Of a stretch of DNA of 64,000 nt, positions 27,445 to 58,119 are shown in pieces. The DNA lies in assembly GCA_002269645.1 (NCBI GenBank), contig NIVC01002112.1:140228-204227 (forward strand), read 5' to 3'. Position 1 is the first letter of the stretch. The number at the start of each line of letters is the position of its first letter. Position numbers and translations under genes: made by a program. This DNA comes from Macrostomum lignano (taxonomy: Eukaryota). A model generated the notes under the pieces. It ran no database searches. It saw nothing but the letters and a program-made list of their open reading frames with translations, and was not told where the DNA came from.

Positions 27445-27499
27445 ATTTGTTTAATTAATAAGCTAATCACTGCACGTTTGTTTCTGGAGAGAAACTGAC

Positions 27500-28279: not shown

Positions 28280-28917
<638 letters not shown>

Positions 28918-30462: not shown

Positions 30463-30660
30463 AGTGTGCATCATGATATGTGACCCTTAGATTCAGTTTC
30501 TAGTTCATACGACTTGAAATCTCCACCTAGTTCTAGGTCTATTAAAATCGCTTTTCTTTATGCCATACTTCTACATCAAAATTAAATCTCATTTATAGAT
30601 TTAGAACAATCTCAACACTCAAGTGAAATTGTAACAGTTTAATTTAAATATAAATTATTT

Positions 30661-30760
30661 ATAGCTAGTCCTAATAAAAAACAAAATTATAATTTGCTTT
30701 TATTTCTTCTAGTTTGTAATTTAATGAAATCTACATTTTGTATATCATATGTACAATCTG
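30661..30760 (+). CDS. tmem8: TMEM8 exon 1 (signal peptide) with non-canonical ATA at the orthologous start; first ATG at 30724
   Basis: Reads ATA GCT AGT CCT...(I)ASPNKKQNYNLLLFLLVCNLMKSTFCISYVQS-G|gtaagt. The phase-1 donor fits exon 2. An in-frame TAA at 30640 excludes an upstream ATG. The inverted copy has ATG at this position. Confidence 0.7.
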
Positions 30761-32206
30761 GTAAGTTATTATAAATTATTTTTTAAGCCTACTTAGGCCC
30801 CAATGGCAATAGCCTATTACTTTTATTATATAGTAGGACATATGCCTAGTTACCAATCAAATAAAGAGACCCTAATATTACTGTAGACCTAGTACTCCTA
30901 ATTCATATTCTCTGGTTATCTTTTCTCTTTTCTATTTTTATCTATCTTTCGTATAGTATATTTATTTCATATTTATTTCTTTTAGTTAGATATAAAAATC
31001 ATATATTAATTTAGGTATTTCTTTGATTAGGCCTAGGCTTATATTTTGATTGGGCCTAGATCTTTTTGAAATTTCTAGGCTAGGCTAATCTTTCCAAAAT
31101 TGCTTTCAAAAGTTTTTCAAAAAGAACCTAGAAAAGATTTTTTTCTATTTGCTTTTAAAATAATGCTAATTGCTAAAAAATTCTTATAGCCTATATAGAA
31201 ATAAATTTCTAATTCTAGCTAGGCCCCATTATTTGTCAAAATAATGTAGAAAAGACTTTAAGAAAATAAATAAATATGAATCAGCCCACCTAGCATTAGC
31301 AAGGTCCCACATTCTATCTTAGCATATTCTAGCCTTTTTTACTATAGCCATTATAGGAATCACCTAGCTGTTTCTATTGGCAGTATACATATATAAGTTG
31401 CTATTGGCTGAGAGTAGTATTTTGTCCAATAGTAAATTACTTGTATGTGTTACCAATAGGAAATAGCTAGGTAAATTCCTAAGTAGTAGGTTGTGCCTAA
31501 ATATAAAGCATCTATTATGAAAACTCCACATTGGGGGTAAGACCCCCCCCCAAAGGCAGAGAGCTTGTATTTATTATAGCTGGCCAACAATAAAGGTTGT
31601 CTGACAAAGCGTTAGCCAATCACACGCGCATGTGCGTAGGTGTACACCTGCACTGTACATTACACTGAGTGGAGCAACTGAGCAACCCCATGCTACCACA
31701 TCTATATTGACAGATTTTGCTATAGTTTTTAATGTCAATATTCACTACAGATATTAGAATAACTAAATAGGCTACCCAGGTATATATACTTGGTAAAACA
31801 GCTTTCTACTTTTTGTTTAGTAGCAATGAAGAATCCATAAGCTTTTATAAGAATAAAGACAACTGAGATGACTTTCATAAATTAAAAAATTAAGCTTGCA
31901 GATATAAACAGCTTGCTAATTGGTTTAGCCATAATGTACATTGGCCATTGAAATTTAACAAGCAGATTTTGATTGGAACAACCAAGGAAAGTAATAAAAA
32001 TTGGGGGTGGCTGGGTAAGGATAGAGATTCTGTGTGGTCTCCACCTTAGACACTACCTTAGACACTAGCTTTTCTAACCCTATACTCATGTAGGGTCATG
32101 TTAGCTTTGTATATACTAGACAAAGTCAAATTTGGAAATTTATGTTTGCAGTTTATGTCAGTTTTAATTTTTAATCTAAGGTTAAATGTATATTGAAATT
32201 GTCCAG

Positions 32207-35200
32207 ATACAACTTTGTGGTCCAGGCCTGTATTGTTCTATATAAGCAGCTACAATGAGGTGCAAAAGTCGGAGACTGTGCCTATAATTGCTCCGAAGCT
32301 GGCTGGCAACATAGTCTGGTCTGTTAACTTGCAAGTGGATGATGGTTGTCCTATTTATCCAATAGATGTGTAAGTATGTTTTCATTATTTTCAATATTTT
32401 TGCACATGGAAATAGTTTTTTTCTTTTGAACAAAATTTTATATATAGGCTTGTGCATGTTGATTTTGGGTCACTCACTATAAATTATATTTTATTCATTG
32501 TCTTTTAGATATTTTCTACTACTATTGTGCAGTAGTAGACTATTGGACTATTAACCCTATGTTAAAGTCATATAGGTAATCTTCACCTTGCATTGGTATC
32601 AGATGTGGTTGCTCTAGCATCTATCAACATGCTGCAAATCAGAATATTTAACTCTTTCATTTTGATTTCTGAAAGATTTATGCCGATGGTTTTTAATGTG
32701 TCTTTTTGCATATTGATTAAATTAAATATAGCCAAATTGCTGTGCTAAATAACAGGTTAGTTAGTTGCGCATATTGGTATTGATTTGTATTTGAAGTTAT
32801 TTTTGTCTAGGTGCCATTCTGCCAAAGGTGACAGGCGCATGGGGATTTTTTAAACTGTTTTTGTTTTTTATTTACCAATTATGTACTATAGAGTAGCTTA
32901 TTTCAGGATAATCCTACTACAGAGTAGCCTATTACAGAGTAACCTACTACAGAGTAGCCTACTACAGAGTAACCTACTACAGAGTAACCTACTACAGAGT
33001 AACCTACTACAGAGTAGCCTACTACAGAGTAGCCTACTACAGAGTAACCTACTACAGAGTAGCCTACTACAGAGTAACCTACTACAGAGTAACCTACTAC
33101 AGAGTAGCCTACTACAGAGTAGCCTACTACAGAGTAACCTACTACAGAGTAGCCTACTACAGAGTAGCCTATTGCCGAGTAACGTACTGCAGAGAAGCCT
33201 ATTGCAGAGTAACGTACTGCAGAGAAGCCTATTGCAGAGTAGCCTACTACAGAGTAGCCTACTACAGAGTAGCCTACTACAGAGTAACCTACTACAGAGT
33301 AGCCTACTACAGAGTAGCCTACTACAGAGTAACCTACTACAGAGTAGCCTACTACAGAGTAACGTACTGCAGAGCATACATGCGCAACCTTGGGAATCAC
33401 CCGGCCGTTTCTATTGGCAACACGCATATGTAGCTCGTAAGTCGCTATTGGCTGAAAGCAGTCACGTGACTACTATTCTGTCCAATAGCGACTTACATGT
33501 GTGTTGCCAATAGAAACGGCTACTACAAAGTAAACTACAAAGTAACCTGCAAGAGTATTAAACTACAGAGTAACCTGCAAGAGTATTAAACTACAGAGTA
33601 ACCTGCAAGAGTAGTAAACTACAGAGTAACCTGCAAGAGTAGTAAACTACAGAGTAACCTGCAAGAGTAGTAAACTACAAAGTAACCTGCAAGAGTAGTA
33701 AACTACAAAGTAACCTGCAAGAGTATTAAACTACAGAGTAACCTGCAAGAGTATTAAACTACAGAGTAACCTATCTTTTGGACGCCGAAGTAGCAACTCT
33801 AAATCAAAGCAGGAATGTTCAGAGTTCGAACCCTACGCTCAGTGCTCCATGTATAGTGCCAGAGCATAGTAACTGATTTCAAAGTATCTGGAACAGACAA
33901 AAAAGAAACGAGAATATAATAGTACATAGTTTAATTTTTTCCCAATCAAATAAGCATCTCAGAGGTCGTAGTTACAAAAAGTGTACCTCTGGATGAGAAA
34001 AGGTTTAAATTGTCACGTGACTGGTCTGAACCAATCCCCATCAGCAAGGTCGCAAAAGTGCCCATCCGGAAAATATACTAATACTAAGTAGATGACGAGG
34101 CATTTAGCCCTAATAATGCGGTCATAGTTACTCCTGCCGTTTGCCCAAAATCACGTCAATTTTGGTTTAGGTTCCTTTCATAGGTAAGTGGCATTTTTGG
34201 TCAAAAACTAAGTTGCACGGCCAGCGTAGATCATGCCTGCATGATCAGCGATGAAGAAAGGTTATCGGTGTGTCACCCGCAGCTTGATCAGCAGCCAGCA
34301 CGGCGCCGTTCCTTGGCTAAACGAGTCAGCCTGGTCGCCAGATCTGCTGATCCTTCGCCGACAGAGATTCGCTATTCGATTGGACAAATCCTCTACTCGC
34401 GCCCAGGCCATGTTCGATACCGTGGGCGGCGGGTTGTTCTACTTTACCGTTATTAGCATGGAGCCCGAGCAGTCCAAGCTGCAGAAGCTGGTAGGTAGGG
34501 CTGAAGACTAGGAACTCAAATTCTTAGAAACGCTCTTGAAATCCACCTCTCAGAGTCTATCAACTTTTAGTTAAAACAATTTTGCTAGGGACTTTAAAGG
34601 TCGCTTTCTTGGACAATCTCTTTGCTCATGGAGATGTGTATCTAATTATCAGAAGTTCCAGCTTTCATATGCTTCGAAAACGTCGTGTTCTACAGTCAAT
34701 TGTATAAAATAGTGAATAAGAAACTTACTAAAAATACATTCCTAAAAACCATCCGACAAGCATATTCCTAGACAGCGTTGTATAGGCATTTTCCTTAAAA
34801 TCATTCGATAAAGATATCCCATTTTGCTAGAAACTCGGGCATGACTTAAAGCACATTCCTAGAAAATCTAATAAGCATATTCCTAGAAACCTTCCGATAA
34901 GCATATTCCTAGAAACCTCCCGATACGCATATTCCTTGAAACCTCCCGATAAGCATATTCCTTGAAACCTCCCGATAAGCATATTCCTAGAAACCTCCCG
35001 ATACGCATATTCCTAGAAACCTCCCGATAAGCATATTCCTAGAAACCTCCCGATAAGCATATTCCTTGAAACCTCCCGATAAGCATATTCCTTGAAACCT
35101 CCCGATAAGCATATTCCTTGAAACCTCCCGATAAGCATATTCCTTGAAACCTCCCGATAAGCATATTCCTTGAAACCTCCCGATAAGCATATTCCTAGAA

Positions 35201-38200
35201 ACCTCCCGATAAGCATATTCCTTGAAACCTCCCGATAAGCATATTCCTAGAAACCTCCCGATAAGCATATTCCTTGAAACCTCCCGATAAGCATATTCCT
35301 TGAAACCTCCCGATAAGCATATTCCTTGAAACCTCCCGATAAGCATATTCCTTGAAACCTCCCGATAAGCATATTCCTTGAAACCTCCCGATATCCCGAT
35401 AATCACATTCTTAGAAACCCTCGGATAAGCACATTCCTAAAAACCCTGATATAAGGAAATTCCTAGAAAACCTGGTATAAGCACATTCCTAGAAACCCTC
35501 CGGTAAGTAACTCCTAGAAAACCTCGGATAAGTACATTCCTAGAAACCCTCCGGTAAGTAACTCCTAGAAACTCTCGGATAAGTACATTCCTAGAAACCC
35601 TCCGGTAAGTAACTCCTAGAAACTCTCGGATAAGTACATTCCTAGAAACCCTCCGGTAAGTAACTCCTAGAAACCCTCGGATAAGTACATTCCTAGAAAC
35701 CCTCCGGTAAGTAATTCCTAGAAACCCTCTGGTAATAATTCCTAGAAACCCTCGGATAAGTACATTCCTAGAAACCCTCCGGTAAGTAATTCCTAGAAAC
35801 CCTCGGATAAGTACATTCCTAGAAACCCTCGGACTGTAAGCTCATTTCCTAGACAAAAAATCTTAATGCTAGATGCTTAATCTTCAGATTTCGTTTTTCA
35901 ATGCTCTTCAGCGGACACAAGCAAACGTATTTCAGTGCTGCATACTTGTACTTTTAAATCGCAAACAATTTTTAGGGCATAAAAAAGACGCCATGCTCCT
36001 ATGCCGTGCACTTTAAGCCATCTGGCGATGTGCCAATCACTACGCCCCTGCTTAGCCTGGATACTAATGTTACTGTGCGAATACTTATTGGCCAGGTGCA
36101 ATTCTTCCGGTGAGTATAACCCCTATTCCTGTCATTTTTGCAGGCATTAAACGCTAAGAATGCCGAATTGAATCTTTTATTTCGTACATAAAATTTCGAG
36201 CTCTTGAGATTCGAGTTTATGAGATTCGAGCTTATAAGATTTGAGTTTGTGAGATTCGAGTTTGTGAGATTTGAGTTTGTTAGATTCAAGCTTATGAGAT
36301 TTGAGTTTTTTAGATTCGAGCTTATGCGATTTGAATTTGTTAGATTCGAGCTTATGAGATTTAAGTTTGTTAGATTCGAGCTTATGAGATTCGACTTTAT
36401 GAGATTTAAGATTGTTAGATTCGAGCTTATTCGAGTTTATGAGATTCGAGCTTATGAGATTTGAGTTTGTTAGATTCGAGCTTGTGAGATTCAACTTTAT
36501 GAGATTTAAGTTTGTTAGATTCGAGCTTATGAGATTCGACTTTATGAGATTTAGGTTTGTTAGATTCGAGCTTATGAGATTCGACTTTATGAGATTTAGG
36601 TTTGTTAGATTCGAGCTTATTCGAGTTTATGAGATTCGAGCTTATGAGATTCGAGTTTATGAGATTCGAGCTTATGAGATTCGAGCTTATGAGATTCGAG
36701 CTTATGAGATTTGAGTTTGTTAGATTCGAATTTATGAGATTCGAGCTTATGAGATTCGACTTTATGATATTCGAGTTTATGAATATGAGTTTATGATCTA
36801 ATTATCTTATAAACTAATTATTCGAGTTTATGAGATTCGAGCTTATGAGATTCGAGCTTATGAGATTTGAGTTTGTTAGATTCGAGCTTATGAGATTCGA
36901 GTTTATGAGATTTGAGTTTATGAGATTCGAGCTTATGAGATTTGAGCTTATGAGATTTGAGTTTTTTAGATTCGAGCTTATGAGATTTGAGTTTGTTAGA
37001 ATTGAGCTTATGAGATTTGAGCTTATGAGATTCGAGCTTATGAGATTCGAGCTTATGAGATTCGAGCTTATGAGATTTCGAGCTTATGAGATTCGAGCTT
37101 ATGAGATTTCGAGATTATGAGATTCGAGCTTATGAGATTTGAGTTTTTTAGATTCGAGCTTATGAGATTTGAGTTTGTTAGAATTGAGCTTATGAGATTT
37201 GAGCTTATGAGATTCGAGCTTATGAGATTCGAGCTTATGAGATTCGAGCTTATGAGATTTCAAGCTGATATGATTCGAGCTTATGAGACCCCTGCCCTGT
37301 CTAGTGTTTACAAATCAGTTGTTTTTAACTTCTACAAACAATTTTAGCCTCGCCCTGCCCGAGTTTGCCTACAGCGTTGAACTCGAGATCTTCGACTGCA
37401 CTCCGAAAATCCACTTTGCCGGCTTAGGCCTCAGAAATGCCAGCGAATCCGGCTGCGCGCTGTTCGCTCTCGTGTCAGCCGGCTCCGTTGCCGACCCTCG
37501 CCAGCTGTCAGCAAGATTAACGTCTACTAAGCGAATATTCGCCGGCCAATTATCGCCTCTGTCCGATGCCAATTATTTGTCATTGGCTGCTAATAAAGTT
37601 CCAGTTAGTGTGACTGTATCGGTGCGCCTGCACCGGAAATGTCGGCCGCCTTCGGCTGACCTGTCGTTATTGGCTACTTCAGCCTCATCGAATTCGGAAA
37701 CTGCTTGCGAGCTGTACTCGCCAAGTTTACAGGTGAAAAATAGTTTTTTTAGTTTCTTATCTTAATTTTTATCTCCTATGTGCTCAATTTTATATCTTTC
37801 ATCACTTCCTCAATCTGATCTTCGTCTCATCCAGAATCTTTCAATTATCTTATACCGAATATTGTTTTCATGTATCTCTTGAACGTTCTCTACATCTTAT
37901 CTACAGCCCTATCTTCTCTTCATATTATCATTAATCTTCCTCTTATCGTATCCCCAATCTTCCCTTCATCTCATCCCCAATCTCACCCTCATCTCATCCC
38001 AAATCTCGCCTTCATCTCATCCCAAATCTCGCCTTTATCTCATCCCCAATCTCGCCTACATCTCATCCTCAATCTTGCCTTCATCTCATCCCAAATCTCG
38101 CCTTCATCTCATTCCAAATCTCGCCTTCATCTCATCCCAAATCTCGCCTTTATCTCATCCCAAATCTCGCCTTCATCTCATCTCAAATCTCGCCTTCATC

Positions 38201-41200
38201 TCATCTCAAATCTCGCCTTCATCTCATCCCAATCTCGCCTTTATCTCATTCTCAATTTCGCCTTCATCTCATCTCAAATCTCGCCTTCATCTCATCCCAA
38301 ATCTCGCCTTCATCTCATCCCAAATCTCGCCTTCATCTCATTCCAAATCTCGCCTTCATCTCATTCTTAAATTCGCCTTCATCTCATTCCAAATCTCGCC
38401 TTCATCTCATCCCAAATCTCGCCTTCATCTCATTCCAAATCTCGCCTTCATCTCATTCCAAATCTCGCCTTCATCTCATTCCAAATCTCGCCTTCATCTC
38501 ATCCCAAATCTCGCCTTCATCTCATCCAAATCTCGCCTTCATCTCATCTCAAATCTCGCCTTCATCTCATCCCAATCTCGCCTTTATCTCATTCTCAATT
38601 TCGCCTTCATCTCATCTCAAATCTCGCCTTCATCTCATCCCAAATCTCGCCTTCATCTCATCCCAAATCTCGCCTTCATCTCATTCCAAATCTCGCCTTT
38701 ATCTCATTCTTAAATTCGCCTTCATTTCATTCCAAATCTCGCCTTTCTCATATCTCGCCTTCATCTCATTCCAAATCTCGCCTTCATCTCATTCCAAATC
38801 TCGCCTTCATCTCATTCTTAAATTCGCCTTCATCTCATTCCAAATCTCGCCTTCATCTCATCCCAAATCTCGCCTTCATCTCATCTCAAATCTCGCCTTC
38901 ATCTCATTCCGAATCTCGCCTTTATCTCATTCTTAATTTCGCCTTCATCTCATCCCCAATCTTCAATGATTCCTTAATCTCATCCCATCATTCTCGCCTA
39001 ATCATCTCGCCACCGTGACCCCCACCCCACGCAGAACTACGACATCTATGGCAAGACGGTGATCGCGCCGTCCAGCCGAGAGGCTGGCGGACGAATTCTG
39101 CGCATTTATTCCAGCATCCCCACCGTGATCCCCTTCACTATTCGCGGCCTATTCGACTCGGTTCGCTACCTGCTAATTGATGTCGAGTCCAAGACTAATC
39201 CAGTGTCCTTGGACTTTTGTCTCGGCAGGCGGCTCAGCCTTGGCCTCGAAGAGGACGCCAAGTTTTGCGAAATTCGATTTCAAATGCGAAACCATGACAA
39301 CCAGCTGAGTCGCGTGATGCCGCATCCGCCGGCCGGGGTCTGGTATCTGGCGATCGTGAATAAGCTGCTTAACAGGTAAAACTGTCTGCTTATTTTTTAT
39401 TAGAGATGAAGGGAGTAATAAGTGATAAAGAGAGAGGCAGGAGATAAAGGGAGAGGCAAAAGATGACAGGAGATGCTATAGAGGAAGGGAGATGCTATAG
39501 ATGAAGGGAGAGGCAAGAGATGAAGGGAGAGGCAAGAGATGAAGGGAGAGGCAAGAGATTAAGGAAAGGGCAAGAGATGAAGGGAGAGGCAAGAGATGAA
39601 GGGAGATGCAATAGATGAAGGGAGAGGCAAGAGATTAAGGAAAGGGCAAGAGATGAAGAGAGAGGCAAGAGATGAAGGGAGAGGCAAGAGATTAAGGAAA
39701 GGGCAAGAGATGAAGGGAGAGGCAAGAGATTAAGGAAAGGGCAAGAGATGAAGGGAGAGGCAAGAGATTAAGGAAAGGGCAAGAGATGAAGGGAGAGGCA
39801 AGAGATTAAGGAAAGGGCAAGAGATGAAGGGAGAGGCAAGCGATTGAAAGCAAGAAAAGCAGAGGGAATTAAAAGATGGGGAAAAGCTGAATCGAGGTAA
39901 AGAAGTGCAGCGAACGGGATATGAAGGTCACATGTAAGTCGAAGATAGAGGAAAGAATTGATAAAGGAAAATTCAGGAAACCTCCAGAACCGTATCTTAG
40001 CACCCGTTTGTAACCCGCTCAAACTGCAGAGCAGAGATTACCTTAACGATTCGAACCACGGATTGTCCATCAAAATGCTTAAATGGTGGCCAATGTGACA
40101 AGCAGTCCATTGCATCGATGACCGTCCGCATCTGCCGCTGCTACGATGGCTTCGCTGGCGACCTGTGCGAGGCTCGCGTGCCCAGCAGCCCCGATCCGCT
40201 GACCTCCCTGCTGCTGCTCTGCCTCAGCAATGCCGCCTTCCTGCCTACCGTGGCCTTGGCCTTCCGCCGCGGCCTGCTGGTTGAAGCCCTCATCTACTGC
40301 GCTGCCATGCTAGCCTCTGCGGTGAGCCTCCCTCATCTTGGCTCTCCCATCCTGAATCTCCCATCCTGAATCTCCCATCCTGACTCCTCTCCATCCTGAC
40401 TCCCCATCCTGACTCTTTCCCATCCTGACTCTCCCATCCTGAATCTCCCATCCTGAATCTCCCATCCTGACTCCCCATCATGACTCTCTCATCCTGACTC
40501 TCCCATCCTGACTCTCTCATCCTGACCCCTCCCATCCTGACTCCCCATCCTGACTCTCCCATCCTGAATCTCCCATCCTGACTCTCCCATCCTGACTCCC
40601 CATCATGATTCCTACCCATCCTGACTCCCCATCCTGACTCCCCATCATGAATTCTCTCCATCCTGACTCCCCATCATGATTCCTACCCATCCTGACTCTC
40701 CATCATGATTCCTCTCCATCCTGACTCCCCATCATGATTCCTACCCATCCTGACTCTCCATCATGATTCCTCTCCATCCTGACTCCCCATCATGACTCCC
40801 CATCCTGACTCTCCCATCCTGACTCTCCCATCCTGAATCTCCCATCCTGACTCTCCCATCCTGACTCTCCCATCCTGAATCTCCCATCCTGACTCTCCCA
40901 TCCTGACTCCCCATCCTGACTCTTTCCCATCCTGACTCCCCATCCTGACTCCCCATCCTGACTCTCCCATCCTGAATCTCCCATTCTGACTCTCCCATCC
41001 TGACTCCCCATCCTGACTCTCCATCCTGACTCTCCCATCCTGACTCTCCCATCCTGACTCCCCATCCTGACTCCCCATCCTGAATCTCCCATCCTGACTC
41101 TCCCATCCTGAATCTCCCATCCTGAATCTCCAATCCTGAATCTCCCATCCTGACTCTTTCCCATCCTGACTCCCCATCCTGACTCCCCATCCTGACTCTC

Positions 41201-44528: not shown

Positions 44529-46307
44529 TCACTGTCTGACTGCCGCTTGCATGAGCAGCTGCTGATTAAAAAGATTCTCAAGAAAACTTCTCACCAGATA
44601 TATATACCTTAAACCTTAGTACGTCCTTAGTAAGTTCTTAGACACCCCTCCTGTCTCTGCATCTGTTCAATCGATTTTTGTAAAAATTTACACAAAACAT
44701 TGACCAATATGTAATGAATTCAGTGCTGAGGGTTTACAGAGCAAAAGCAATCGATCATTTATTGAGGGACCTACGAAATTAGCAATACGATTTTAAACTC
44801 AACAAAATGTAACAGTTAACGAGCAAACAGTTCAAACTTCAAACTGACAAGTTCCAGAGCTTAAAATACAGATCACCAATCGTGAAAATCTTCAGAAGAA
44901 TCTTCATTCCGTCGAATGCACTTGTCATATCGCATCGGCAACTCCTCAGTTCTCATCCTCAATCCACGCCGGCCACATATCCTTAGGTGTCGCTCTGATC
45001 AGCCCCTCCGCAGCCGCTTGCAGCTCAGGGGAAGCTGGCGAACCGCTGGCCTCTTGGAATCATCCTGTGTGCTGAATCTGCTCAGATTGAACTCGTCTCC
45101 CAGAGCTGAAATTGCCGCCCTTTGTTGCAAGCAGACTTCGTGTCGGCGACTCTTTTGCTGTTAAACCATCTGAGGCTGGTTCCGCGTCTCAGCGTCTGAA
45201 TCTCTGCGCACTCTGGCTATGCTGCTTACTGCTTTGTTCTTTTTTCTCTTTAATCCATGACTAAACCTTCACAGCTTGCATTAGTATTAAATCAATACTC
45301 AGCGGGAGCAGTGATATTTTGGAGCTGCAATGTCACCACTGGAGTCCAGATTCGATGCTCTTCAAAAATCGTATTGCTAATTTCGTGGGTTCCTCAGTAG
45401 ATGATCGATTGCTTTTGCTCTGTCAACCCGATTAAGCTGAAACATTAGCACTGAATTCATTACATATTGGCCCATGTTTGTGTAAATTTTTACAGAAATC
45501 GATTGAACAGATGCAGAGATGGAAGGGGTGTCTAAGAACCTTTATTTTATCCAGCAACCTATAATTACTATTATACAGCGAATGGTCACGATCCAAGCAT
45601 GAACTATACGGGCGATTTGCAATCAAACATGACAAGTCAGCCCTGTTTATTTTATCACTCTTGCTGTGCTTCGAGGTTTGAACAGAAGTCTCCTAGCTCT
45701 TTGCTCCGCAAATTCTTTGTTTGTCTTTGTTTGTCTTTGTTTAGTTTTACTCTGGTGCTACAAAAAATATTCTATATTCGTCTTTGTCACAGATGTTGCA
45801 GTCGCATTCGCTTTTAATACGTCGAACACGCGGCTGTTTGTCTGCTTTTCGTAACTTGGTTAATTGGTTTGTCAAATGTTCTTAAATAATTTTGTCTCTA
45901 TTGCGTTTCAACACATGTAACACATGCATGGCTTGGGCTTATGAAATAAAAAGAAGACAATATGAAAATAAATCCTTGACTACATGTACATAAAACCTAC
46001 ATAAAATATAACAGATTAATACGAGGTGCATGCTAAATTAAAGAAAATGTAATCCTCGCTGCCCCAGATCAAATGCAAGCATTGATTTTCTAATGAGAAA
46101 ATCATTTTTTTCTATCTCCTCAAGGGCAATCTTGGAAAATTTTCCATGAAAGTGGCCTCCAAAAAGTAAAACGATCTTAGAGTTTTCCGTCTAATACTAC
46201 AGTGGTGCTTGCATAAATCATGCTATCTGTAATGCCATTTTGTTGAGTAGACTTCTGTAAAGTTTTTAAATTCTCCTTTACATTTGCCATATCATGCAAT
46301 GGAGGGT

Positions 46308-46404
46308 TCATCGGAAGTCAGAGTTTAAGGCAATGGCCTTTGACATGGCCTTGCTACCGCCGCTCGTGTCAAAGGCCATTGCCTTAAACTCTGACTTCCG
46401 ATGA
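46308..46404. repeat. Perfect 38-bp inverted repeat (hairpin, 21-nt loop) upstream of the recombinase
   Basis: TCATCGGAAGTCAGAGTTTAAGGCAATGGCCTTTGACA (46308-46345) is the exact reverse complement of 46367-46404. Confidence 0.95.
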
Positions 46405-46660
46405 GCATCATTGCTTAAAATTTCAAAACTCTTACGTAATCTACGCACTTTATGTACACTATCGTGAATTCTTATCAGTCGATGCTGCTAAGGGGGTTTG
46501 AGATAAGGTTACCTCCACCTCGCCTATGTCTCACCTTTAAGTCGCGCACCTGAAATCACCCACCCCTTACTCTGCACCCACCCCTAAATTAATTACAAAT
46601 ATAAATATTTGCGTGTCTAGAGGTCAAATCTCAGATAGAGAAAAGCGGACGGCTGCAGAG

Positions 46661-48144
46661 ATGGAGGCACCGCTCATTAATTGGAAGCATTTGCCCTGCA
46701 GTGAGCTGGGCAACGTGACCAAGGACGAATTGAATTTTGTTTCGGAGGCTTCTTACAATGACAGAAGGGACGACGAGTTCGCTAGATTTCTCGAATTCAT
46801 TCAAAAGGAGCCCGAGCCCGATGAGCATCTGCCGCTCCTGTAGGAAGGCGGCGTAGATATCAGCGCCATGGACATCGCCGAGATTGTCAGCCTACCAGCA
46901 GACAGCAGGAAGCACATGATCAGCCATGGACAGCGGTTCAGGACATTCCTCACAGAGGAAAATCTTCAGCGCAATTTACAAACCATTCCGAATTCGGTGC
47001 TCAACCAATACATTCGCTACTTCTACTTTAAACTGAAGAAGATTGACGGCGAACCCTACTCTCCCGCATCGCTGGTGTGCATCAGGGCTGGACTGCAGCG
47101 CTATTTGCGAATGATCGAGAAGCTAACCGTTGACATCATCAATGGAGAAGACTTTTCTTCTGAAAATAGCATGCTGCGTGTGAAGGTTCGAGACTTTCAC
47201 CGGAGTGGTGGGAGGACGCAGCAGTTTGAGCCAATCGAGGAGGGGGACATGAGGAAGCTGATGATCTACTTCCAAGGCAGCACAGCTGAAGTTGAGCAGG
47301 ACAAATTCTTATTCTACATCATATACAGCTTTGGCGAGCGAGGCCAGGAGCACCTCAAGTTCTTGAAGGATAGAAGCTCACTTCAATTGCACGTCGACTC
47401 TGATGGAAAGCCGTACTACTGTCTGCCTCCGTTGCCCTCGAAAAATAAGTCAGCAGATCCAGAGAAGGCCAAGAAGCAGCCGGACAACAAGCAGGCCAGA
47501 ATTTACGACGTGGAAAAGGTGGAGAAATACCTCAAGCTGCTTCCAGTTACAACGAAGGACAACAATCTGTTTCCTCGTCCTTTGGCCAGCCGCAACGATG
47601 GAGGCCCTGTTTTCTCCTCGAAGCAGAACCGTGGAGAGAATTATCTGAGTGGCTTCATGAGAAACTTGAGTACGAAGGTGGGACTTGCGAAGACCTACAC
47701 GAATCATTGCATTCGGTAAGACTGATAAATTAATAATAGTAACTTTAATTATGTTATGATACATGTTATGTTACCAATTACTCATGAATCCAACTATATA
47801 AATTTGCACTCTAAAACAGGGTCACGCGAATATGCGATCTCGAGGCGGCAGGGCACAGCATGAGCGATATAATGAGCATTACTGGACAGCTGAGCGAGCG
47901 AAAGACTAGGAGGTACCTGGCCAAGCGTCGCGACCGGTCGCTTCAAAAGACGAGTGAGTCTGTTCACATGAATCGTCATGATCTAGAGCAAGAAGCTGGG
48001 CCACCCGAACATGCTGATGCTGTTGAGATCGTCGGTGAGACTGCAGTATCGACGGAGGTTAGTGTTAGCACTGAAGCTGCCTATTCTGTTGGTACGAAGT
48101 TTGCCTTCAACAATTGCACCTTTCACGGATGTTCCTTTAATTAG
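46661..48144 (+). mobile_element. Crypton-type (DUF3504/ZMYM-like) tyrosine recombinase gene, 2 exons, one upstream in-frame TAG
   Basis: ATG 46661, TAG 46841-46843, then the same frame continues (ATG 46868) to 47715. Intron 47716-47819 (CG|gtaag...aacag|G). Exon 2 is 47820-48144. Motifs: LKKIDGEPYSPASLVCIRAGLQRYL, SFGERG (catalytic R), GENYLSGFM...YTNHCIR (HxxR), ITGQ (normally TGH), RRYL (catalytic Y), C-terminal FNNCTF. Confidence 0.85.
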
Positions 48145-48362
48145 GCATGCAATCTTTACTTCTACAGGAATTAGCAAATTGTACTCGTAGAATTACTGAA
48201 AGAATAAGAACGACAGTCTAGTTTAATATTTTTTATTTAATGACTGTGCCAGTTTAATTATTTACATCTTAAAATAAACGTTTTGAATTGACTGATGCAA
48301 GATCCGCTTTGCAAGATGCTGGATAAAAACTGGCTTGAATTAATTGGTTGCATTGAAATTGG

Positions 48363-48439
48363 AATTCTAGGCAATGGCCGGCCATTGCCATGGGTCATTG
48401 TCATGAGGAGAAATTTTGGGCAATGACATTTCTAGAATT
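48363..48439. repeat. Palindromic cassette downstream of the recombinase
   Basis: Perfect 20-bp palindrome GGCAATGGCCGGCCATTGCC (48370-48389), the GTCATTG/CAATGAC pair and an outer AATTCTAG/CTAGAATT pair. Confidence 0.85.
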
Positions 48440-49139
48440 ATCTTAAACTTCGTAGCCATGCAAGTTCACATAGTATTAGCGTTAAATGAGTTGATTGAAA
48501 TAATATCCTGTATTTTAAATTAAAAAACATTGTTAGCAAAGTGAATCGTTAGCTTAATCTGATTAAATATGGTTCTTTTCTGACTATTATGTTGAAATCA
48601 ATAGCGTTTATTTAAATTTTGTACTTTTGTATCGCAAAATTATATATGACAACAACACTTCACTTCACATTACATTGCCTACAGGGCATATTTTTATGAA
48701 AGTCATTACCCATTTATCATGATTAATTATAATTTACCATTGTAAGGTCATAGTATATGATAACCATTGACGGGATAGCCTAAAGATAAATCCAGACTTA
48801 GATAATATTGTGTAAGAGTTTTAAAGATCTTGACCTAGAATATAATTGACAGTGACAATCATATTTTTTACCTTTTCTAATTTCTGATTGTCTTAAAGCT
48901 TGGACAATTTACCTTTTCTAACTTTTGATTGCCTTAGACCATTTAAAACTAAGGTTTGTTCATTGAGCCTAGTTACTATACTAATTAAAACAGGTCTAGG
49001 GCCTGGGCTAGGTTGCTAGGCCTAGGCCTATTACATGCTACATGTATATTTACCAAAAAAATGTTTCATACATCTACATGATACATTGAAGAAATCTCAA
49101 AGTAAATACTATACATTCTATGCACTAGATTCTAAAATA

Positions 49140-49743
49140 TTGGTTTTTGCATGCCAAGTGAGACACCCCTCAAGCAATCTGAGACTGAATAGCAAAAACA
49201 CTACTGTCTATGGCCACCCCTCGCTGCAGCCCAGCTTTTTGGGATCGCCTTGCAAGCAAAGTGAGAAATTTTTTCAAGCTAAGTGAGAACCATATTGAAA
49301 ACAAAGGGGTGGTTTTACGAAATTACAAAATGATGTACTGTCGGAAACTATATATTTAGAAAAGGATACACAGGAACACAACAAAACAAGCGGTACAAAA
49401 ATTGTTGATAATGTTATAAGCGTTCAAATAAAGGGTTGCATGTTGATACACTGAGCAAACTTTCGAGTGCAGTGGAGCTCCCAGCCTGCGATCTTGTGCG
49501 GAGTAATGAATGACATGCAGCGATTTTCTTCCAAGCTCGTTGCTTGTTAAACGCAGTTGATTTGCCATAGCCCAGCCTTTGTTTTCAATATGGCTCTCAC
49601 TTAGCTTGAAAAAATTTCTCACTTTGCTTGCAAGGCGATCCCAAAAAGCTGGGCTGCAGCGAGGGGTGGCCATAGACAATAGTGTTTTTGCTATTCAGTC
49701 TCAGATTGCTTGAAAAATGTCGCACTTAGCATGCAAAAACCAA
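49140..49743. mobile_element. MITE with about 168-bp TIRs and TA flanks (Tc1/mariner-like)
   Basis: 49140-49307 is the near-perfect reverse complement of 49576-49743 (TTGGTTTTTGCATGC...). TA lies on both sides and there is no internal coding capacity. Confidence 0.8.
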
Positions 49744-49765
49744 TACTAGTGATGCTATAGCCATA

Positions 49766-49835
49766 TAGGGTAACAGTCCACTTCGTTAACAGCCATTTCG
49801 GTAACAGCCACTTCGGTAACAAGTGAGAATAATAT
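49766..49835. mobile_element. Probable transposon terminus fragment (GGGTAACAGTCCACTTCG plus 16-bp subrepeats)
   Basis: G-rich start followed by a GGTAACAGCCA(C/T)TTC-type motif repeated about three times, resembling a TIR with subterminal repeats. No partner end was found. Confidence 0.3.
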
Positions 49836-50399
49836 AATATTCATTAATTGATAGGTTCCGAAAGGATGTGCGAACAAACTATAATGAAAGAACGACAAAA
49901 CACATGCGTACCTGCATGTGCTTAACTTGCTTTAAAGTGTTTTAACCGATCTACAGCTCGCACGCAGTTTCTGAATTGGATGAGGCTGAAGTAGCCAATA
50001 ACGACAGGTTAGCCGAAGGCGGCCGACATTTCCGGTGCAAGCGCACCGATACAGTCACACTAACTGGAACTTTATTAGCAGCCAATGACAAATAATTGGC
50101 ATCGGACAGAGGCGACAATTGGCCGGCGAATATTCGCTTAGTAGACGTTAATCTTGCTGACAGCTGGCGAGGGTCGGCAACGGAGCCGGCTGACACGAGA
50201 GCGAACAGCGCGCAGCCGGATTCGCTGGCATTTCTGAGGCCTAAGCCGGCAAAGTGGATTTTCGGAGTGCAGTCGAAGATCTCGAGTTCAACGCTGTAGG
50301 CAAACTCGGGCAGGGCGAGGCTAAAATTGTTTGTAGAAGTTAAAAACAACTGATTGTAAACACTAGACAGGGCAGGGGTCTCACAAGCTCGAATCATAT

Positions 50400-52510
50400 C
50401 AGCTTGAAATCTCATAAGCTCGAATCTCATAAACTCGAATCTCATAAGCTCGAATCTCATAAACTCGAATTTCATAAACTCAAATCTAATAAACTAGAAT
50501 CTCACAAGCTCGAATCTAACAAACTCAAATCCCATAAGCTCGAATCTAACAAACTTAAATCTCATAAAGTCAAATCTCATAAGCTCGAATCTTACAAACT
50601 TAAATCACATAAAGTCGAATCTCATAAGCTCGAATCTTACAAACTTAAATCTCATAAAGTCGAATCTCACAAGCTCGAATCTAACAAACTCAAATCTCAT
50701 AAGCTCGAATCTCATAAACTCGAATCTAACAAACTTAAATCTCATAAAGTCGAATCTCATAAGCTCGAATCTTACAAACTTAAATCTCATAAAGTCGAAT
50801 CTCATAAGCTCAAATCTCATAAGCTCGAATCTCATAAGCTCGAATCTCATAAGCTCAAATCTCATAAGCTCAAATCTCATAAGCTCGAATCTCATAAGTT
50901 CGAATCTCATAAGTTCGAATCTCATAAGTTCGAATCTAACAAACTCAAATCTAAGCTCGAATCTAACAAACTCGAATCTCATAAGCTAGAATCTCACAAG
51001 CTCGAATCTCAAGCTCGAATCTCACAAGCTCAAATCTCATAAGCTCGAATCTCATAAGCTCGAATCTAAAAAACTCAAATCTCATAAGTTCGAATCTCAT
51101 AAGCTCGAAATCCCATAAGCTCAAAATCTCATAAGCTCGAAATCTCATAAGCTCGAATCTCACCAGCTCGAAATCTCATAAGCTCGAATGTCATAAGCTC
51201 AAATCTCATAAGCTCGAATCTCATAAGCTAGAATCTCATAAGCTCAAATCTCATAAGCTCGAATCTCATAAGCTCAAATCTCATAAGCTCGAATCTCATA
51301 AGCTCGAATCTCACCAGCTCGAATCTCATAAGCTCGAATCTCATAAGCTCGAATCTCATAAGCTCGAATCTCATAAGTTCGAATCTAACAAACTCAAATC
51401 TAAGCTCGAATCTAACAAACTCGAATCTCATAAGCTAGAATCTCACAAGCTCGAATCTCAAGCTCGAATCTCACAAGCTGAAATCTCATAAGCTCGAATC
51501 TCATAAGCTCGAATCTAAAAAACTCAAATCTCATAAGCTCGAATCTCATAAGCTCGAAATCCCATAAGCTCAAAATCTCATAAGCTCGAAATCTCATAAG
51601 CTCGAATCTCACCAGCTCGAAATCTCATAAGCTCGAATGTCATAAGCTCAAATCTCATAAGCTCGAATCTCATAAGCTAGAATCTCATAAGCTCAAATCT
51701 CATAAGCTCGAATCTCATAAGCTCAAATCTCATAAGCTCGAATCTCATAAGCTCGAATCTCACCAGCTCGAATCTCATAAGCTCGAATCTCATAAGTTCG
51801 AATCTAACAAACTCAAATCTAAGCTCGAATCTAACAAACTCGAATCTCATAAGCTCGAATCTCACAAGCTCGAATCTCAAGCTCGAATCTCACAAGCTGA
51901 AATATCATAAGCTCGAATCTCATAAGCTCGAATCTAAAAAACTCAAATCTCATAAGCTCGAATCTCATAAGCTCGAATCTCATAAGCTCGAATCTCACCA
52001 GCTCGAATCTCATAAGCTCGAATCTCATAAGCTCGAATCTCATAAGTTCGAATCTAACAAACTCAAATCTAAGCTCGAATCTAACAAACTCGAATCTCAT
52101 AAGCTAGAATCTCACAAGCTCGAATCTCAAGCTCGAATCTCACAAGCTGAAATCTCATAAGCTCGAATCTCATAAGCTCGAATCTAAAAAACTCAAATCT
52201 CATAAGCTCGAATCTCATAAGCTCGAAATCTCATAAGCTCGAAATCTCATAAGCTCGAATCTCACCAGCTCGAAATCTCATAAGCTCGAATGTCATAAGC
52301 TCAAATCTCATAAACTGAATTTCATAAGCTCGAATCTAACAAACTCAAATCTAAGCTCGAATCTAACAAACTCGAATCTCATAAGCTCGAATCTAAAAAA
52401 CGTCAAATCTCATAAGCTCGAATCTAACAAACTCAAATCTAAGCTAGAATTTCACAAGCTCGAATCTCAAGCTCGAATCTCACAAGCTCGAATCTCATAA
52501 ACTCGAATCT
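50400..52510. repeat. 15-bp ATAAGCTCGAATCTC array with about 449-bp higher-order blocks
   Basis: Nearly identical ORF-track peptides at 50963 and 51412, and at 51228 and 51677. Confidence 0.93.
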
Positions 52511-54812
52511 GAAGAGCTCGAAATTTTACATTGTTAACTTTGTAAAGTTTTAACCTAGCGGAATTCCGATGTACGAAATAAAAGATTCAATTCGGCATTC
52601 TTAGCGTTTAATGCCTGCAAAAATGACAGGAATAGGGGTTATACTCACCGGAAGAATTGCACCTGGCCAATAAGTATTCGCACAGTAACATTAGTATCCA
52701 GGCTAAGCAGGGGCGTAGTGATTGGCACATAACCAGATAGCATAATGTTCACGGCATAGGAGCATGGCGTCTTTTTTATGCCCTAAAAATTGTTTGCGAT
52801 TTAAAAGTACAAGTATGCAGCACTGAAATACGTTTGCTTGTGTCCGCTGAAGAGCATTAAAAAACGAAATCTGAAGATTAAGCATCTAGCATTAAGATTT
52901 TTGTCTAAGAATAGGCGTACAGTCCGAGGGTTTCTAGGAATTACTTACCGGAGGGTTTCTAGGAATGTACTTATCCGAGGGTTTCTAGGAATTACTTACC
53001 GGAGGGTTTCTAGGAATGTACTTATCCGAGGATTTCTAGGAATTATTACCGGAGGGTTTCTAGGAATGTACTTATCCGAGGGTTTCTAGGAATTACTTAC
53101 CGGAGGGTTTCTAGGAATGTACTTATCCGAGGGTTTCTAGGAATTGCTTACCGGAGGGTTTCTAGGAATGTACTTATCCGAGGGTTTCTAGGAATGTACT
53201 TATCCGAGGGTTTCTAGGAGTTACTTACCGGAGGGTTTCTAGGAATGTGCTTATACCAGGTTTTCTAGGAATTTCCTTATATCAGGCCAGGCAGGGTTTT
53301 TAAGAATGTGCTTATCCGAGGGTTTCTAGGAATGTGCTTATCGGGATATCGGGAGGTTTCAAGGAATATGCTTATCGGGAGGTTTCAAGGAATATGCTTA
53401 TCGGGAGGTTTCTAGGAATATGCTTATTGGGAGGTTTCTAGGAATATGCTTATCGGAAGGTTTCTAGGAATATGCTTATCAGATTTTCTAGGAATGTGCT
53501 TTAAGTCATGCCAGAGTTTCTAGCAAAATGGGATACCTTTATCGAATGATTTTAAGGAAAATGCCTATACAACGCTGTCTAGGAATATGCTTGTCGGATG
53601 GTTTTTAGGAATGTACTTTTTAGTAATTTTCTTATTCACTATTTTATAAAATTGACTGGAGAACACGATGTTTTCGAAGCATATGAAAGCTGGAACTTCT
53701 GATAATTAGATACACATCTCCATGAGCAAAGAGATTGTCCAAGAAAGCGACCTTTAAAGTCCCTAGCAAAATTGTTTTAACTAAAAGTTGATAGACTCTG
53801 AGAGGTGGATTTCAAGAGCGTTTCTAAGAAATTGAGTTCCTAGTCTTCAGCCCTACCTACCAGTTTCTGCAGCTTGGACTGCTCGGGCTCCATGCTAATA
53901 ACGGTAAAGTAGAACAGCCCGCCGCCCACGGTATCGAACATAGCCCGGGCGCGAGTAGAGGATTTGTCCAATCGAATAGCGAATCTCTGTCGGCGAAGGA
54001 TCAGCAGATCTGGCGACCAGGCTGACTCGTTTAGCCAGGGAACGGCGCCGTGCTGGCTGCTGATCAAGCTGCGGGTGACACACCGATAACCATTTCTTCA
54101 TCGCTGATCATGCAGGCATGATCTACGCTGGCCGTGCAACTTAGTTTTTGACCAAAAATGCCACTTACCTATGAAAGGAACCTAAACCAAAATTGACGTG
54201 ATTTTGGGCAAACGGCAGGAGTAACTATGACCGCATTATTAGGGCTAAATGCCGCGTCATCTACTTAGTATTAGTATATTTTCCGGATGGGCACTTTTGC
54301 GACCTTGCTGATGGGGATTGGTTCAGACCAGTCACGTGACAATTTAAACCTTTTCTCATCCAGAGGTACACTTTTTGTAACTACGACCTCTGAGATGCTT
54401 ATTTGATTGGGAAAAAATAAACTATGTACTATTATATTCTCGTTTCTTTTTTGTCTGTTCCAGATACTTTGAAATCAGTTACTATGCTCTGGCACTATAC
54501 ATGGAGCACTGAGCGTAGGGTTCGAACTCTGAACATTCCTGCTTTGATTTAGAGTTGCTACTTCGGCGTCCAAAAGATAGGTTACTCTGTAGTTTACTAC
54601 TCTTGCAGGTTACTTTGTAGTTTACTACTCTTGCAGGTTACTCTGTAGTTTACTACTCTTGCAGGTTACTCTGTAGTTTAATACTCTTGCAGGTTACTCT
54701 GTAGTTTACTACTCTTGCAGGTTACTCTGTAGTTTACTACTCTTGCAGGTTACTCTGTAGTTTACTACTCTTGCAGGTTACTCTGTAGTTTACTACTCTG
54801 CAGCATGCTTGG

Positions 54813-54964
54813 GCGCAACCTAGGGATTCACCCAGCCGTTTCTATTGGCAACACACATGTAAGTCGCCATTGGACAGAATAGTAGTCACGTGACTGCTCT
54901 CAGCCAATAGCGACTTACATGTGTGCTGCCAATAGAAACGGCCGGGCGACTCCCAAGGTTGCGC
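54813..54964. mobile_element. About 150-bp fully palindromic MITE-like element (CCAAT boxes around a central GTCACGTGAC)
   Basis: GCGCAACC...GCCGTTTCTATTGGC / GCCAATAGAAACGGC...GGTTGCGC. The mirror copy at 33382-33520 lacks part of one end. Older diverged copies lie at about 31340-31497 and 56456-56600. Confidence 0.7.
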
Positions 54965-56642
54965 ATGTATGCTCTGCAGTACTTTACTCTGTAGTAGGCT
55001 TCTCTGTAATAGGCTTCTCTGTAGTAGGTTACTCTGTAATAGGCTTCTCTGTAATAGGCTTCTCTGTGGTAGGTTACTCTGTAATAGGCTTCTCTGTAGT
55101 AGGTTACTCTGTAGTAGGCTACTCTGTAGTAGGTTGTTACTCTGTAGTAGGCTACTCTGTAGTAGGTTTCTCTGTAGTAGGTTACTCTGCAATAGGCTTC
55201 TCTGCAGTACATTACTCTGTAGTAGGCTACTCTGTAGTAGGATTATCCTGAAATAAGCTACTCTATAGTACATAATTGGTAAATAAAAAACAAAAACAGT
55301 TTAAAAAATCCCCATGCGCCTGTCACCTTTGGCAGAATGGCACCTAGACAAAAAACAACTTCAAATACAAACCAATACCAATATTCACAACAAACTAACC
55401 TGCTCTTTAGCACAGCAATTTGGCTATATTTAATTTAATCAATATGCAAAAAGACACATTAAAAACCATTGGCATAAATCTTTCAGAAATCAAAATGAAA
55501 GAATTAAATATTCTGATTTGCAGCATGTTGATAGATGCTAGAGCAACCACATCTGATACCAATGCAAGGTGAAGATTACCTATAGGACTTTAACATAGAG
55601 TTAATAGTCCAATAGTCTACTACTGCACAATAGTAGTAGAAAATATCTAAAAGACAATGAATAAAATATAATTTATAGTGAGTGACCCAAAATCAACATG
55701 CACAAGCCTATACATAAAATTTTGTTCAAAAGAAAAAAACTATTTCCATGTGCAAAAATATTGAAAATAATGAAAACATACTTACACATCCATTGGATAA
55801 ATAGGACAACCATCATCCACTTGCAAGTTAACAGACTAGACTATGTTGCCAGCCATCTTCGGAGCAATTATAGGCATAGTCTCCGACTTTTGCACCTCAT
55901 TGTAGCTGCTTATGTAGAAAAATACAGGCCTTGACCAAAAAGTTGTATCTGGACAATTTTAATATACATTTATACCTTAGATTAAAAATCAAAACTGACA
56001 TAAAATACAAACATACCTTTCAAAATTTGACTTTGTCTGGTATATACAAAGCTAACATGAATGGTATAGGATTAAAGTCTAAGGTAGTGTCTAAGGTGGA
56101 GACCACACAGAATCTTTATCCCTACCTAGCTATCCCTAATTTCTATTACCTTCCTTGGTTGTTCCAATCTAAAAATCTGCTTGTTAAATTTCAGTGGCTA
56201 ATGTACATTATGGCTAAACCAATTAGCAAGCTGTTTATATCTGCAAGCTTAATTTTTTAATTTATGAAAGTCATCTCAGTTGTCTTTATTCTTATAAAAG
56301 CTTATGGATTCTTCATTGCTACTAAACAAAAAGTAGAAAGCTGTTTTACCAAGTATATATGCCTGGGTAGCCTATTTAGTTATTTTAATTTCTGTGGTTA
56401 ATATTGACATTAAAAATTATAGCAAAATCTATCAATATAGATGCTTTATACTTGGGCACAACCTACTACTTAGGAATTTACCCAGCTATTTCCTATTGGC
56501 AACACATAAGTAATTTGCTGTAAGACAAAATATTACTCTTAGCCAATAGAAACTTATAAGTGTATATTGCCAATAGAAACAACTAGGTGATTCCTATAAT
56601 GGCTATAGTAAAAAAGGCTAGAATATGCTGAGATAAAACGTG

Positions 56643-57087
56643 GGCGATCCTTCGGTTTCCTGCTCTAAATTATTTTAATGTGATATTATATCATAAAGGG
56701 TTTGAATGGCGATTCTAAAATAATTAAAAAATGATCCATTCCTGCACATGGATCCATTTTGAAGGTAATGATCCCAATTCTGAAGCAAATGATTTTGATT
56801 TTAAAGTGAATGAACCCAATCCTAAGGGAATTATCCCAACCGTGAAGTGAATTTTCCCGATCCTGAAGTGAATGATCCTGATTCTAAAGCGAATGGTTTT
56901 GATTTTGATTAGTCACTACTATCTACTGTAGTGCAACTGACTGACTAACTGTCTATATCTTCCTATATTGTATTTTTTTATTTTTTGTTATGCTTACCTC
57001 TGTTGCGCTATTCAAACTTGTTTTATAATTATAGTATAATAATATCTAATGTTAAAATAATTTAGAGTGGGAAACCAAAGGATCACC
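56643..57087. mobile_element. hAT-like MITE, present only in the right arm
   Basis: TIR GG(C/T)GATCCTT(C/T)GGTTTCC and 8-bp TSD AAAAC(G/A)TG. The left arm has the empty site near 31295-31310. Confidence 0.75.
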
Positions 57088-58119
57088 AAAACATGGGCCT
57101 TGCTAGTGCTAGATAGGCTGATTGATATTTATTTATTTTTTGAAGTCTTCTACATTATTTTGACAAAAATTATAGGGCCTAGCTAGAAATAGAAATTTAT
57201 TTCTATATAGGGTATAAGAATTTTTTAGCAAATAGCAAATAGCATTGTTTTAAAAGCAAATAGAAAAAAGCATTTTCTAGGTTATTTTAGAAAAACTATA
57301 TCTAGACCTAACAATTTTGGAAAGAATAGCCTAGAAATATGAAAAAGATCTAGGCCCAATCCAAATATAAGCCTAGGCTTAATCAAAGAAATACCTAATT
57401 GATTAGGCCCTATATGATTTTTTATATCTAACTAGTAAAAGAAATAAATATGAAATAAATATATTATACAAAAGATAGATAAGAATAGGAAAGTGAAAAG
57501 AAAACCAGAGAATATGAATTAGGAGTACTAGGTCTACAGTTATATTAGGGTCTCTTTATGTGATTGGTAACTAGACCTACTATATAATAAAAGTATTAGG
57601 CTATTGCCATTGGGCCTAAGTAGGCTTAAAGAAAATAATTTATAATAACTTACCTGATTGTACATGTGATATACAAAATGTAGATTTCACTAAATTACAA
57701 ACTAGAAGAAATAAAAGCAAATTATAATAATGTTTTTTATTAGGACTAGCCATAAAAAATTACATTTAAATTAAACTGTTACAATTTCACTTGGGTCTTG
57801 AGATTGCTCTAAATCTATAAATGAGATTTAAAGTAGAGTAGAAGTATGGCATAAAGAAAAGCGATTTTAATCGACCTAGAACTAGGTGGAGATTTTAAGT
57901 CATATGAACTAGAAACTGAATCTAAGGATCACATATCCTGATGCACACTGATGAACTAAGATTTTAGAATAATACTAGCAATCTTCGCCCCCCGTTGGGG
58001 GACATCTGGATAGAATCTCTGTTCTCTAGAAGTATCAAAAAGATAACGAAATAAAGCCTTCACAAAGACAACAGACAAACTGCTCAAATAAAGTGTAATG
58101 CAAAAAGAAATCATCCCAA

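Follow-up and report, generated by a model that had tools for sequence, protein, structure and literature searches.

Did two copies of one gene segment, each disabled by a different point mutation, lose their function independently, or does their complementary damage record an exchange between them? This question is raised by a TMEM8/PGAP6-like gene of Macrostomum lignano, which is located in a stretch of 64,000 nt on contig NIVC01002112.1 (assembly GCA_002269645.1, positions 140,228 to 204,227 of the forward strand). This whole stretch is referred to as the window, and coordinates are given as positions within it. The 5′ 7.3 kb of the gene recur in inverted orientation 12.2 kb further downstream, and the original prediction on this DNA held that neither orientation, as assembled, encodes a canonical protein, while a crossover in intron 1 would restore one. 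The explanation that we favour, and to which we would give about an even chance, is that a TMEM8/PGAP6-like gene has undergone a palindrome-like inverted segmental duplication and that its copies decay independently in a redundant, recently polyploid genome.

Results

On direct reading, exon 1 of the left copy (30661–30760, plus strand, with a GT donor at 30761), which encodes the signal peptide, opens with ATA GCT AGT CCT, its first codon being the ATA at 30661–30663. An in-frame TAA is located 21 nt upstream (30640–30642), and the only in-frame ATG within the exon, at 30724 (codon 22), lies behind the hydrophobic LLLFLLVC core; another ATG, in a different frame, follows at 30749. The corresponding exon 1′ of the right copy (57654–57753, minus strand) starts with ATG GCT AGT CCT (ATG at 57753–57751), encodes the full signal peptide and has GTG at codon 22. 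Exon 2′ of the same copy (55786–55948, minus strand) carries a change from TGG to TAG at 55838–55836, while exon 2 of the left copy (32207–32369, plus strand) is intact with TGG at 32317–32319. Each lesion is a single G>A transition within AT-rich surroundings, and both reside in the outer 1.9 kb of their arm. The ATA start, the upstream TAA, the ATG at 30724 and the ATG, GTG and TAG of the right copy, all of them part of the original prediction, were confirmed base by base, and the argument that the left copy is deprived of its signal peptide held as well, since the exon-1 peptides of both copies reach a best Kyte-Doolittle score over 9 residues of 2.8, as compared to 1.06 for a protein starting at M22. 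An AUG-initiated signal peptide is, therefore, missing from the left copy and present only in the truncated right copy.

The two copies form kilobase-scale inverted arms (7.3 kb, 84–99.7% identity) around a unique spacer. The left arm (30463–37716, plus strand), as delimited by blastn and MAFFT, comprises 198 bp of upstream sequence, exons 1 to 4 and 369 nt from the start of exon 5; its outer boundary is sharp at AGTGTGCATCA. The spacer of 12,235 nt (37717–49951) contains the final 16 nt of exon 5 together with exons 6 to 9 and an open reading frame (ORF) for a recombinase, and it is followed by the right arm (49952–57949, minus strand), an inverted, truncated 5′ copy. An exchange between the arms would flip the segment 37717–49951, and the end of the spacer would then complete exon 5. 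The inversion topology and the geometry of the rescue had been predicted correctly: a crossover in intron 1 (30761–32206 on the left, 55949–57653 on the right) would join the ATG-bearing exon 1′ to the intact exons 2 to 9.

Exons 1′ to 4′ of the right arm keep their splice sites. Exon 3′ (53861–54068, minus strand) is open and differs by one amino acid, and exon 4′ (52649–52782, minus strand) is likewise open, with six substitutions at 52749–52731 that alter five residues. This cluster occupies 19 nt (52731–52749, corresponding to 36009–36027 on the left) and turns HFKP..D into NIML..Y on the right. Exon 5′ (49952–50320, minus strand) is truncated: the junction of the right arm with the spacer (..CCGATC-TA-CAGCTC.., with the central TA as 2-nt microhomology) gives an immediate TAG at 49953–49951 when read on the minus strand. 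With this exon-5 end, the TAG in exon 2′ and the cluster in exon 4′, the right copy has the characteristics of a truncated pseudogene. Because it is truncated in exon 5, it is dead whatever exon 2′ reads, as the stump of a once longer copy.

The gene on the left (plus strand, 30661–44528) consists of nine coding exons with GT-AG introns throughout and encodes 844 amino acids arranged as a signal peptide, a large ectodomain, a putative EGF-like domain and a 7-TM DUF3522 domain. Exons 1 and 2 are followed by exon 3 (34283–34490) and exon 4 (35976–36109), both recovered by a splice-chain search and a gain in profile score, and by exon 5 (37348–37732), within which the arm homology stops at 37716, 16 nt short of the donor. 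The spacer harbors exon 6 (39035–39375), exon 7 (40030–40321; putative EGF-like domain and start of DUF3522), exon 8 (42751–43014; DUF3522) and exon 9 with the stop codon (43881–44528; end of DUF3522 and a low-complexity tail), all on the plus strand. Using the spacer exons as query, we identified a protein annotated as ‘BOX15_Mlig028130g1, partial’ (P0001), whose gene resides on contig NIVC01001888.1 (GCA_002269645.1). It shares 100% identity with exons 7 to 9 and matches PF12036 (DUF3522) with E=1.8e-42. The match to the EGF-like family PF07974 (E=3e-4) has, at 21.4 bits, a score just below the cut-off of 22.1 bits; the cysteine pattern lines up with the family profile directly in front of the TM domain.

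A total of 566 TMEM8 homologues were found, and a family profile was built from 83 full-length members. The nine-exon protein scored 377 bits against this profile in an end-to-end block from the core of the signal peptide to the end of DUF3522 (profile positions 10–716 to residues 13–694), with the family motif C..V.l..q.G.vP.ln crossing the junction of exons 2 and 3; signal peptides similarly open typical family members such as P0004 and P0005. The profile matched the ORF pieces in colinear order and revealed an additional piece at 34245–34508. A model of only seven exons, in which exon 2 is joined in frame to 37348, reached 328 bits, and the addition of 34283–34490 and 35976–36109 gained 49 bits. 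The nine-exon model put forward originally was thus reproduced. Pfam gave no match with isolated ORF pieces of exons 1 and 2 and of the introns, and a word-based homologue search using the peptide of exons 1′ and 2 was negative as well.

The divergence between the arms is unevenly distributed. Non-coding sequence differs by 5–8% over the outer 1.9 kb (30463–32369; upstream region and intron 1), as opposed to 0.3–2.2% over the inner 5.3 kb, and the step between the two is located at the border of exon 2 and intron 2 (32369–32442). In exons 1 and 2, 14 of 263 nt differ, and 11 of these differences are non-synonymous (start loss and nonsense codon included) and three synonymous (pN/pS 0.96). Exon 5, when compared between the arms, has one non-synonymous and five synonymous differences (pN/pS 0.07), and in exon 3 five nucleotide changes alter a single residue. 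By these measures, the lesions are in the part of the arms that is most diverged and evolves neutrally. Neutral simulations with as many differences as observed (14 in 263 coding nt) left a given copy disabled in about 40% of the trials and both copies in 15–20%, and complementary lesions in exons 1 and 2 occurred in 6–8%. Since neutral change alone yields this pattern at such a frequency, complementarity as such is no evidence of either design or exchange. Thus, while the gene model, the lesions, the signal-peptide argument and the crossover geometry of the original prediction all stood, a special significance of the complementarity was unsupported. Of the four readings offered with the prediction, the scar of a past inversion or gene conversion and the consensus error (more aptly a homeologue chimera) retain some probability, AUA initiation would be weak, and the live switch lacks direct support.

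An exchange may nevertheless have contributed. According to this alternative, which we consider unlikely, yet deserving of serious attention, a dead fragment once held both the ATA and the TAG and a live gene neither, until an inversion by crossover in intron 1, or a conversion tract, broke the live gene. The geometry would fit exactly, and only one decaying copy would be needed instead of two. The patchy identity (0.3% divergence in 33773–34282, 1–2% elsewhere inside and 5–8% outside), together with the step at the border of exon 2 and intron 2, suggests from the comparison of these two sequences that the arms have exchanged DNA. In addition, the GC>AT asymmetry between the arms flips within intron 1 (25:15 versus 13:24, Fisher p=0.023), which would be weakly in line with an old exchange at this position. 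However, a reciprocal crossover would be traceless in a two-sequence comparison, neutral non-coding sites should lack a copy-specific asymmetry and the signal is weak, and chance suffices for the pattern at the frequency given above. An attempt to polarize the left and right variants by the family profile was uninformative, all 16 chimeras scoring within 4 bits of each other.

Further information on the history of the right arm came from another assembly, Mlig_3_7, in the form of a contig end (L001), which is without exons 1 to 6. It is colinear with 39717–49953 of the window, and the breakpoint on the spacer side is common to both to the nucleotide. Beyond this point, L001 continues with 94 nt of filler and then with an inverted copy B, which leads from position 44215 of exon 9 backwards across exons 8 and 7. 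In unique DNA, copies A and B differ by 1.2–2.3%, and pN/pS in exons 7 to 9 is 0.23; four substitutions fall within 60 nt at the start of the right arm, beside the junction. The right arm is, on the basis of these alignments, best read as the remnant of copy B after a loss of about 6.6 kb, copy B having probably once been near-complete. The breakpoint ..CCGATCTA is thereby common to two structures, leading into exon 5 of B in the window (49951–49953) and, via the filler, into exon 9 of B in L001 (10227–10321). Exon 7 contains one additional nucleotide in L001 (position 459, window 40175), and the contig breaks off within a 19-nt minisatellite. The insertion together with the contig end accounts for the annotation of P0001 as a partial protein starting with RVPSS. 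Look-ups in the public record for the exact product of the exon-5 ORF, and for that of the junction ORF, returned neither.

The agreement between the window and L001 changes abruptly. Only two substitutions were found in 40000–49270 (9.3 kb), as opposed to 13 in 49271–49887 (617 nt, 2.1%), and those in the latter segment (L001 9545–10161) are mostly C/T. From the alignment, the jump looks like a switch between homeologous subgenomes in the window or in L001, a real recombinant or a mutation cluster associated with the breakpoint. The switch, at about 49.27 kb, begins inside a local inverted repeat of 170 nt (49138–49307 and 49576–49745, spanning 49138–49745) with 95% complementarity and a loop of 268 nt, 208 nt from the arm junction, and this repeat is a plausible fragile or fold-back site. 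M. lignano has three homeologous subgenomes with a divergence of about 1.9–2.4%, and 36% of the Mlig_3_7 scaffolds are chimeric (PMC10733133). Because the switch is at the level of homeologues, it is unproven that a single molecule carries both arms.

Thus, it has to be considered that the window may combine homeologous (S/L1/L2) or haplotypic copies into a mosaic, or contain a consensus error, so that the observed combination of an ATA exon 1, intact exons 2 to 9 and this right arm is found in no single molecule. We regard such an artefact as improbable. The divergence jump, which reaches the inter-subgenome level immediately before the two structures part, is what a mosaic would produce in a genome of three subgenomes and many chimeric scaffolds, and long inverted repeats rich in minisatellites assemble poorly. 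Homeologue switching, however, takes place where sequences are homologous, and the novel junction at 49951–49953 cannot arise in this way. Moreover, the right arm has ATG, and mixing of the arms cannot yield ATA, which must hence exist in some real copy. The consensus of the window is also the cleaner one, with no frameshifts in 844 codons as compared to many 1-nt indels in L001.

It might further be speculated that the left gene is functional as it stands, by an AUA start, by transcripts with a different 5′ exon or by some other means of acquiring a signal peptide. Exons 2 to 9 are intact and the comparison of A and B indicates purifying selection, and the signal-peptide frame downstream of the ATA is open and conserved. 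The spliced leader of M. lignano ends in ATG, and about 30% of the genes are trans-spliced (PMC8629364). Rescue by this terminal AUG was rejected, as all six AG acceptors within 30600–30723 are out of frame. Neither 24000–32206 nor 32370–37347 yielded an alternative first exon with an ATG and a hydrophobic core in combination with an in-phase donor; an in-frame ATG directly 5′ of exon 5, at 37283, is accompanied by a weak hydrophobic stretch. Near-cognate initiation is an established phenomenon, and AUA is among the weaker near-cognate start codons. At this site the position -3 relative to the ATA is T, and AUA initiation of the left gene would possibly occur, in a weak and inefficient manner. 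Given the weak codon and its context, the in-frame TAA 21 nt upstream and the lack of an in-frame acceptor or alternative first exon, a functional left gene appears very unlikely.

The recombinase ORF in the spacer is of the Crypton type (46661–48144, plus strand; 46661–47715 and 47820–48144, with an intron at 47716–47819). It matches the integrase profiles phrog_216 (E=4e-6) and phrog_1 (E=3e-4) and, weakly, the QRICH1 domain; a combination of integrase and QRICH1 has been described for Crypton-derived genes (PMC3212892). In the window, the ORF is interrupted by a premature TAG at 46841–46843, where the Mlig_3_7 copy has CAG (L001 7115) and an intact ORF. A structure model calculated without alignment had a pLDDT of 39 and was too poor for judging the catalytic residues, and a PDB sequence search with the ORF gave no match.

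Inverted repeats flanking a segment with a recombinase gene, an intact ORF in the Mlig_3_7 copy and a spacer-side breakpoint (49953) common to two structures resemble invertible-segment systems, but that the 12.2-kb segment is a live switch, recurrently inverted, possibly by the resident recombinase, to toggle the 5′ module of exons 6 to 9, is extremely improbable, as neither assembled orientation yields a canonical protein (the left lacking an AUG, the right having the nonsense codon in exon 2′) and only an intron-1 crossover would, the right module breaks off within exon 5′, a premature stop disrupts the recombinase ORF of the window, the arms are diverged gene copies rather than short defined sites, and there is no evidence of both orientations. 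The same very low probability applies to a eukaryotic invertible-segment switch in which two diverged 5′ modules (promoter, signal-peptide exon and exons 2 to 5) lie on either side of the segment with the gene body and the recombinase, and repeated inversion by variable crossovers within the arms shuffles or repairs the 5′ end of the PGAP6-like gene.

Other features of the locus

The introns of the two arms differ in several further respects. Intron 1 of the left copy has a run of G>A changes at 32003–32024 and a 183-nt segment of its own (31516–31698), which is unrelated to a MITE-like insertion of 445 nt with 53-nt terminal inverted repeats that is present only in intron 1′ of the right copy (56643–57087). 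A 15-nt intronic minisatellite has 73 copies on the left (36195–37288) and 144 on the right (50379–52522), and a 26-nt minisatellite has about 38 on the left (34849–35827) and about 22 on the right (52923–53501).

Tandem repeats of 16/61 nt, in which forward units give way to their reverse complement, form a palindromic array (29617–30074) that precedes the left arm by about 400 bp. Still further upstream, the minus strand carries a two-exon FoxD-like forkhead gene (26025–27444) and, at about 11.7–18.4 kb, exons of an ELAV-like RRM gene. A search of the protein database gave no FoxD protein of M. lignano, the best match having 70% identity, and Rfam and tRNA scans of 29–59 kb were without a match.

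Discussion

Our analysis is most readily reconciled with an independent decay of the two copies. Copy B, near-complete at first, would have lost about 6.6 kb and been reduced to a dead 5′ stump, and the two lesions would have arisen independently of each other under relaxed constraint. The left gene would then be a start-codon-loss allele, which is null or, at best, weakly expressed from the AUA or from M22, in the latter case yielding a product without a signal peptide. Since there are three homeologous subgenomes (PMC10733133), a copy that has lost its start codon can be tolerated, and it might be hypothesized that the homeologous copies have permitted the loss in this case. The inverted arms may, in addition, serve as a substrate for occasional homologous exchange; nothing indicates that such an exchange is used as a regulatory device.

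Several observations are not easily accommodated by independent decay. Exons 2 to 9 of the left copy are fully intact and bear, in the comparison of A and B, the signature of purifying selection, and the loss of the start codon in the only full-length copy of the window is unexpected unless it is very recent or buffered. The 14 differences in exons 1 and 2 come without lineage assignment, as the comparison has no outgroup. The divergence step at the border of exon 2 and intron 2 suggests exchange between the arms, and the asymmetry flip in intron 1 (p=0.023) points in the same direction. Finally, the left and the right part are joined across the divergence switch at about 49.27 kb, and their linkage on one molecule is unproven. 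A recombinational origin of the present combination is, thus, possible.

If the ordinary explanation by independent decay is true, the locus provides a worked example of an inverted duplicate that decays in a neopolyploid, by truncation at a microhomology junction, by divergence at the edge of the arms and by a start loss buffered by homeologues. It also illustrates how annotation and assembly of M. lignano can go astray in regions of this kind. The gene model of Mlig028130 should carry nine exons, and the copy in the window should be flagged as a start-loss allele. If, on the other hand, the arms should prove to exchange recurrently, this would be one of the rare instances in animals of an inversion that re-pairs a gene body with alternative 5′ modules.

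Comparison with known systems

The situation is similar to the post-polyploidy fractionation described for M. lignano, where several copies of most loci exist that have diverged by about 2% and differ in structure mostly by indels (PMC10733133). About 12% of the genome is no longer triploid (PMC10733133). Because of the polyploid copies, the indels and the loss of the triploid state, a start loss and a truncation in single copies are to be expected; the published analysis is genome-wide, and the present locus is not described there. With respect to the gene itself, the encoded protein resembles the TMEM8A/PGAP6 family (DUF3522, PF12036) in that a putative EGF-like module precedes the 7-TM domain, the YHACD and HSxWH motifs are present, and an N-terminal signal peptide is located at the position typical of the family. 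It differs by the mutated start codon of the full-length copy, the long low-complexity C-terminal tail and the weakly conserved ectodomain.

Programmed invertible segments with a resident recombinase are known from Hin/Gin, the fim switch, the shufflons and FLP on the yeast 2-micron plasmid. These systems share with the present locus the inverted repeats around an ORF, here of the tyrosine-recombinase type, and an inversion that changes the 5′ end joined to a coding body. In contrast, the M. lignano locus, which is known from assembled sequence, has no defined short sites, its recombinase ORF is interrupted, neither simple orientation is functional, and no heterogeneity of orientation has been shown. 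A further counterpart in architecture is provided by the ampliconic palindromes of the primate X and Y chromosomes, which undergo arm-to-arm gene conversion. Inverted arms, a unique spacer and a high identity over most of the arm, which would imply concerted evolution, are common to both; the arms studied here are, however, much shorter (7.3 kb) and far less identical (84–99.7%), the outer 1.9 kb are unhomogenized, and one arm is the remnant of a deletion.

Nearby inverted copies that act as substrates for homologous inversion are known from human, namely IDS/IDS2 (Hunter syndrome), F8 int22h and the FLNA-EMD inverted duplicons. As in M. lignano, a gene and an inverted partial copy are positioned a few to tens of kilobases apart, and exchange between them inverts the DNA in between and recombines parts of gene and pseudogene; the copies show patchy gene conversion, which the patchy divergence suggests for the present arms as well. 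At the present locus, no inversion has been observed. A further difference is that here the duplicated part is the 5′ module, with promoter, signal-peptide exon and exons 2 to 5, and because of this an exchange could repair the gene instead of breaking it. Taken together, we consider the locus an inverted partial gene duplication capable of homologous exchange, of a kind that is already known from human IDS/IDS2 and F8 int22h.

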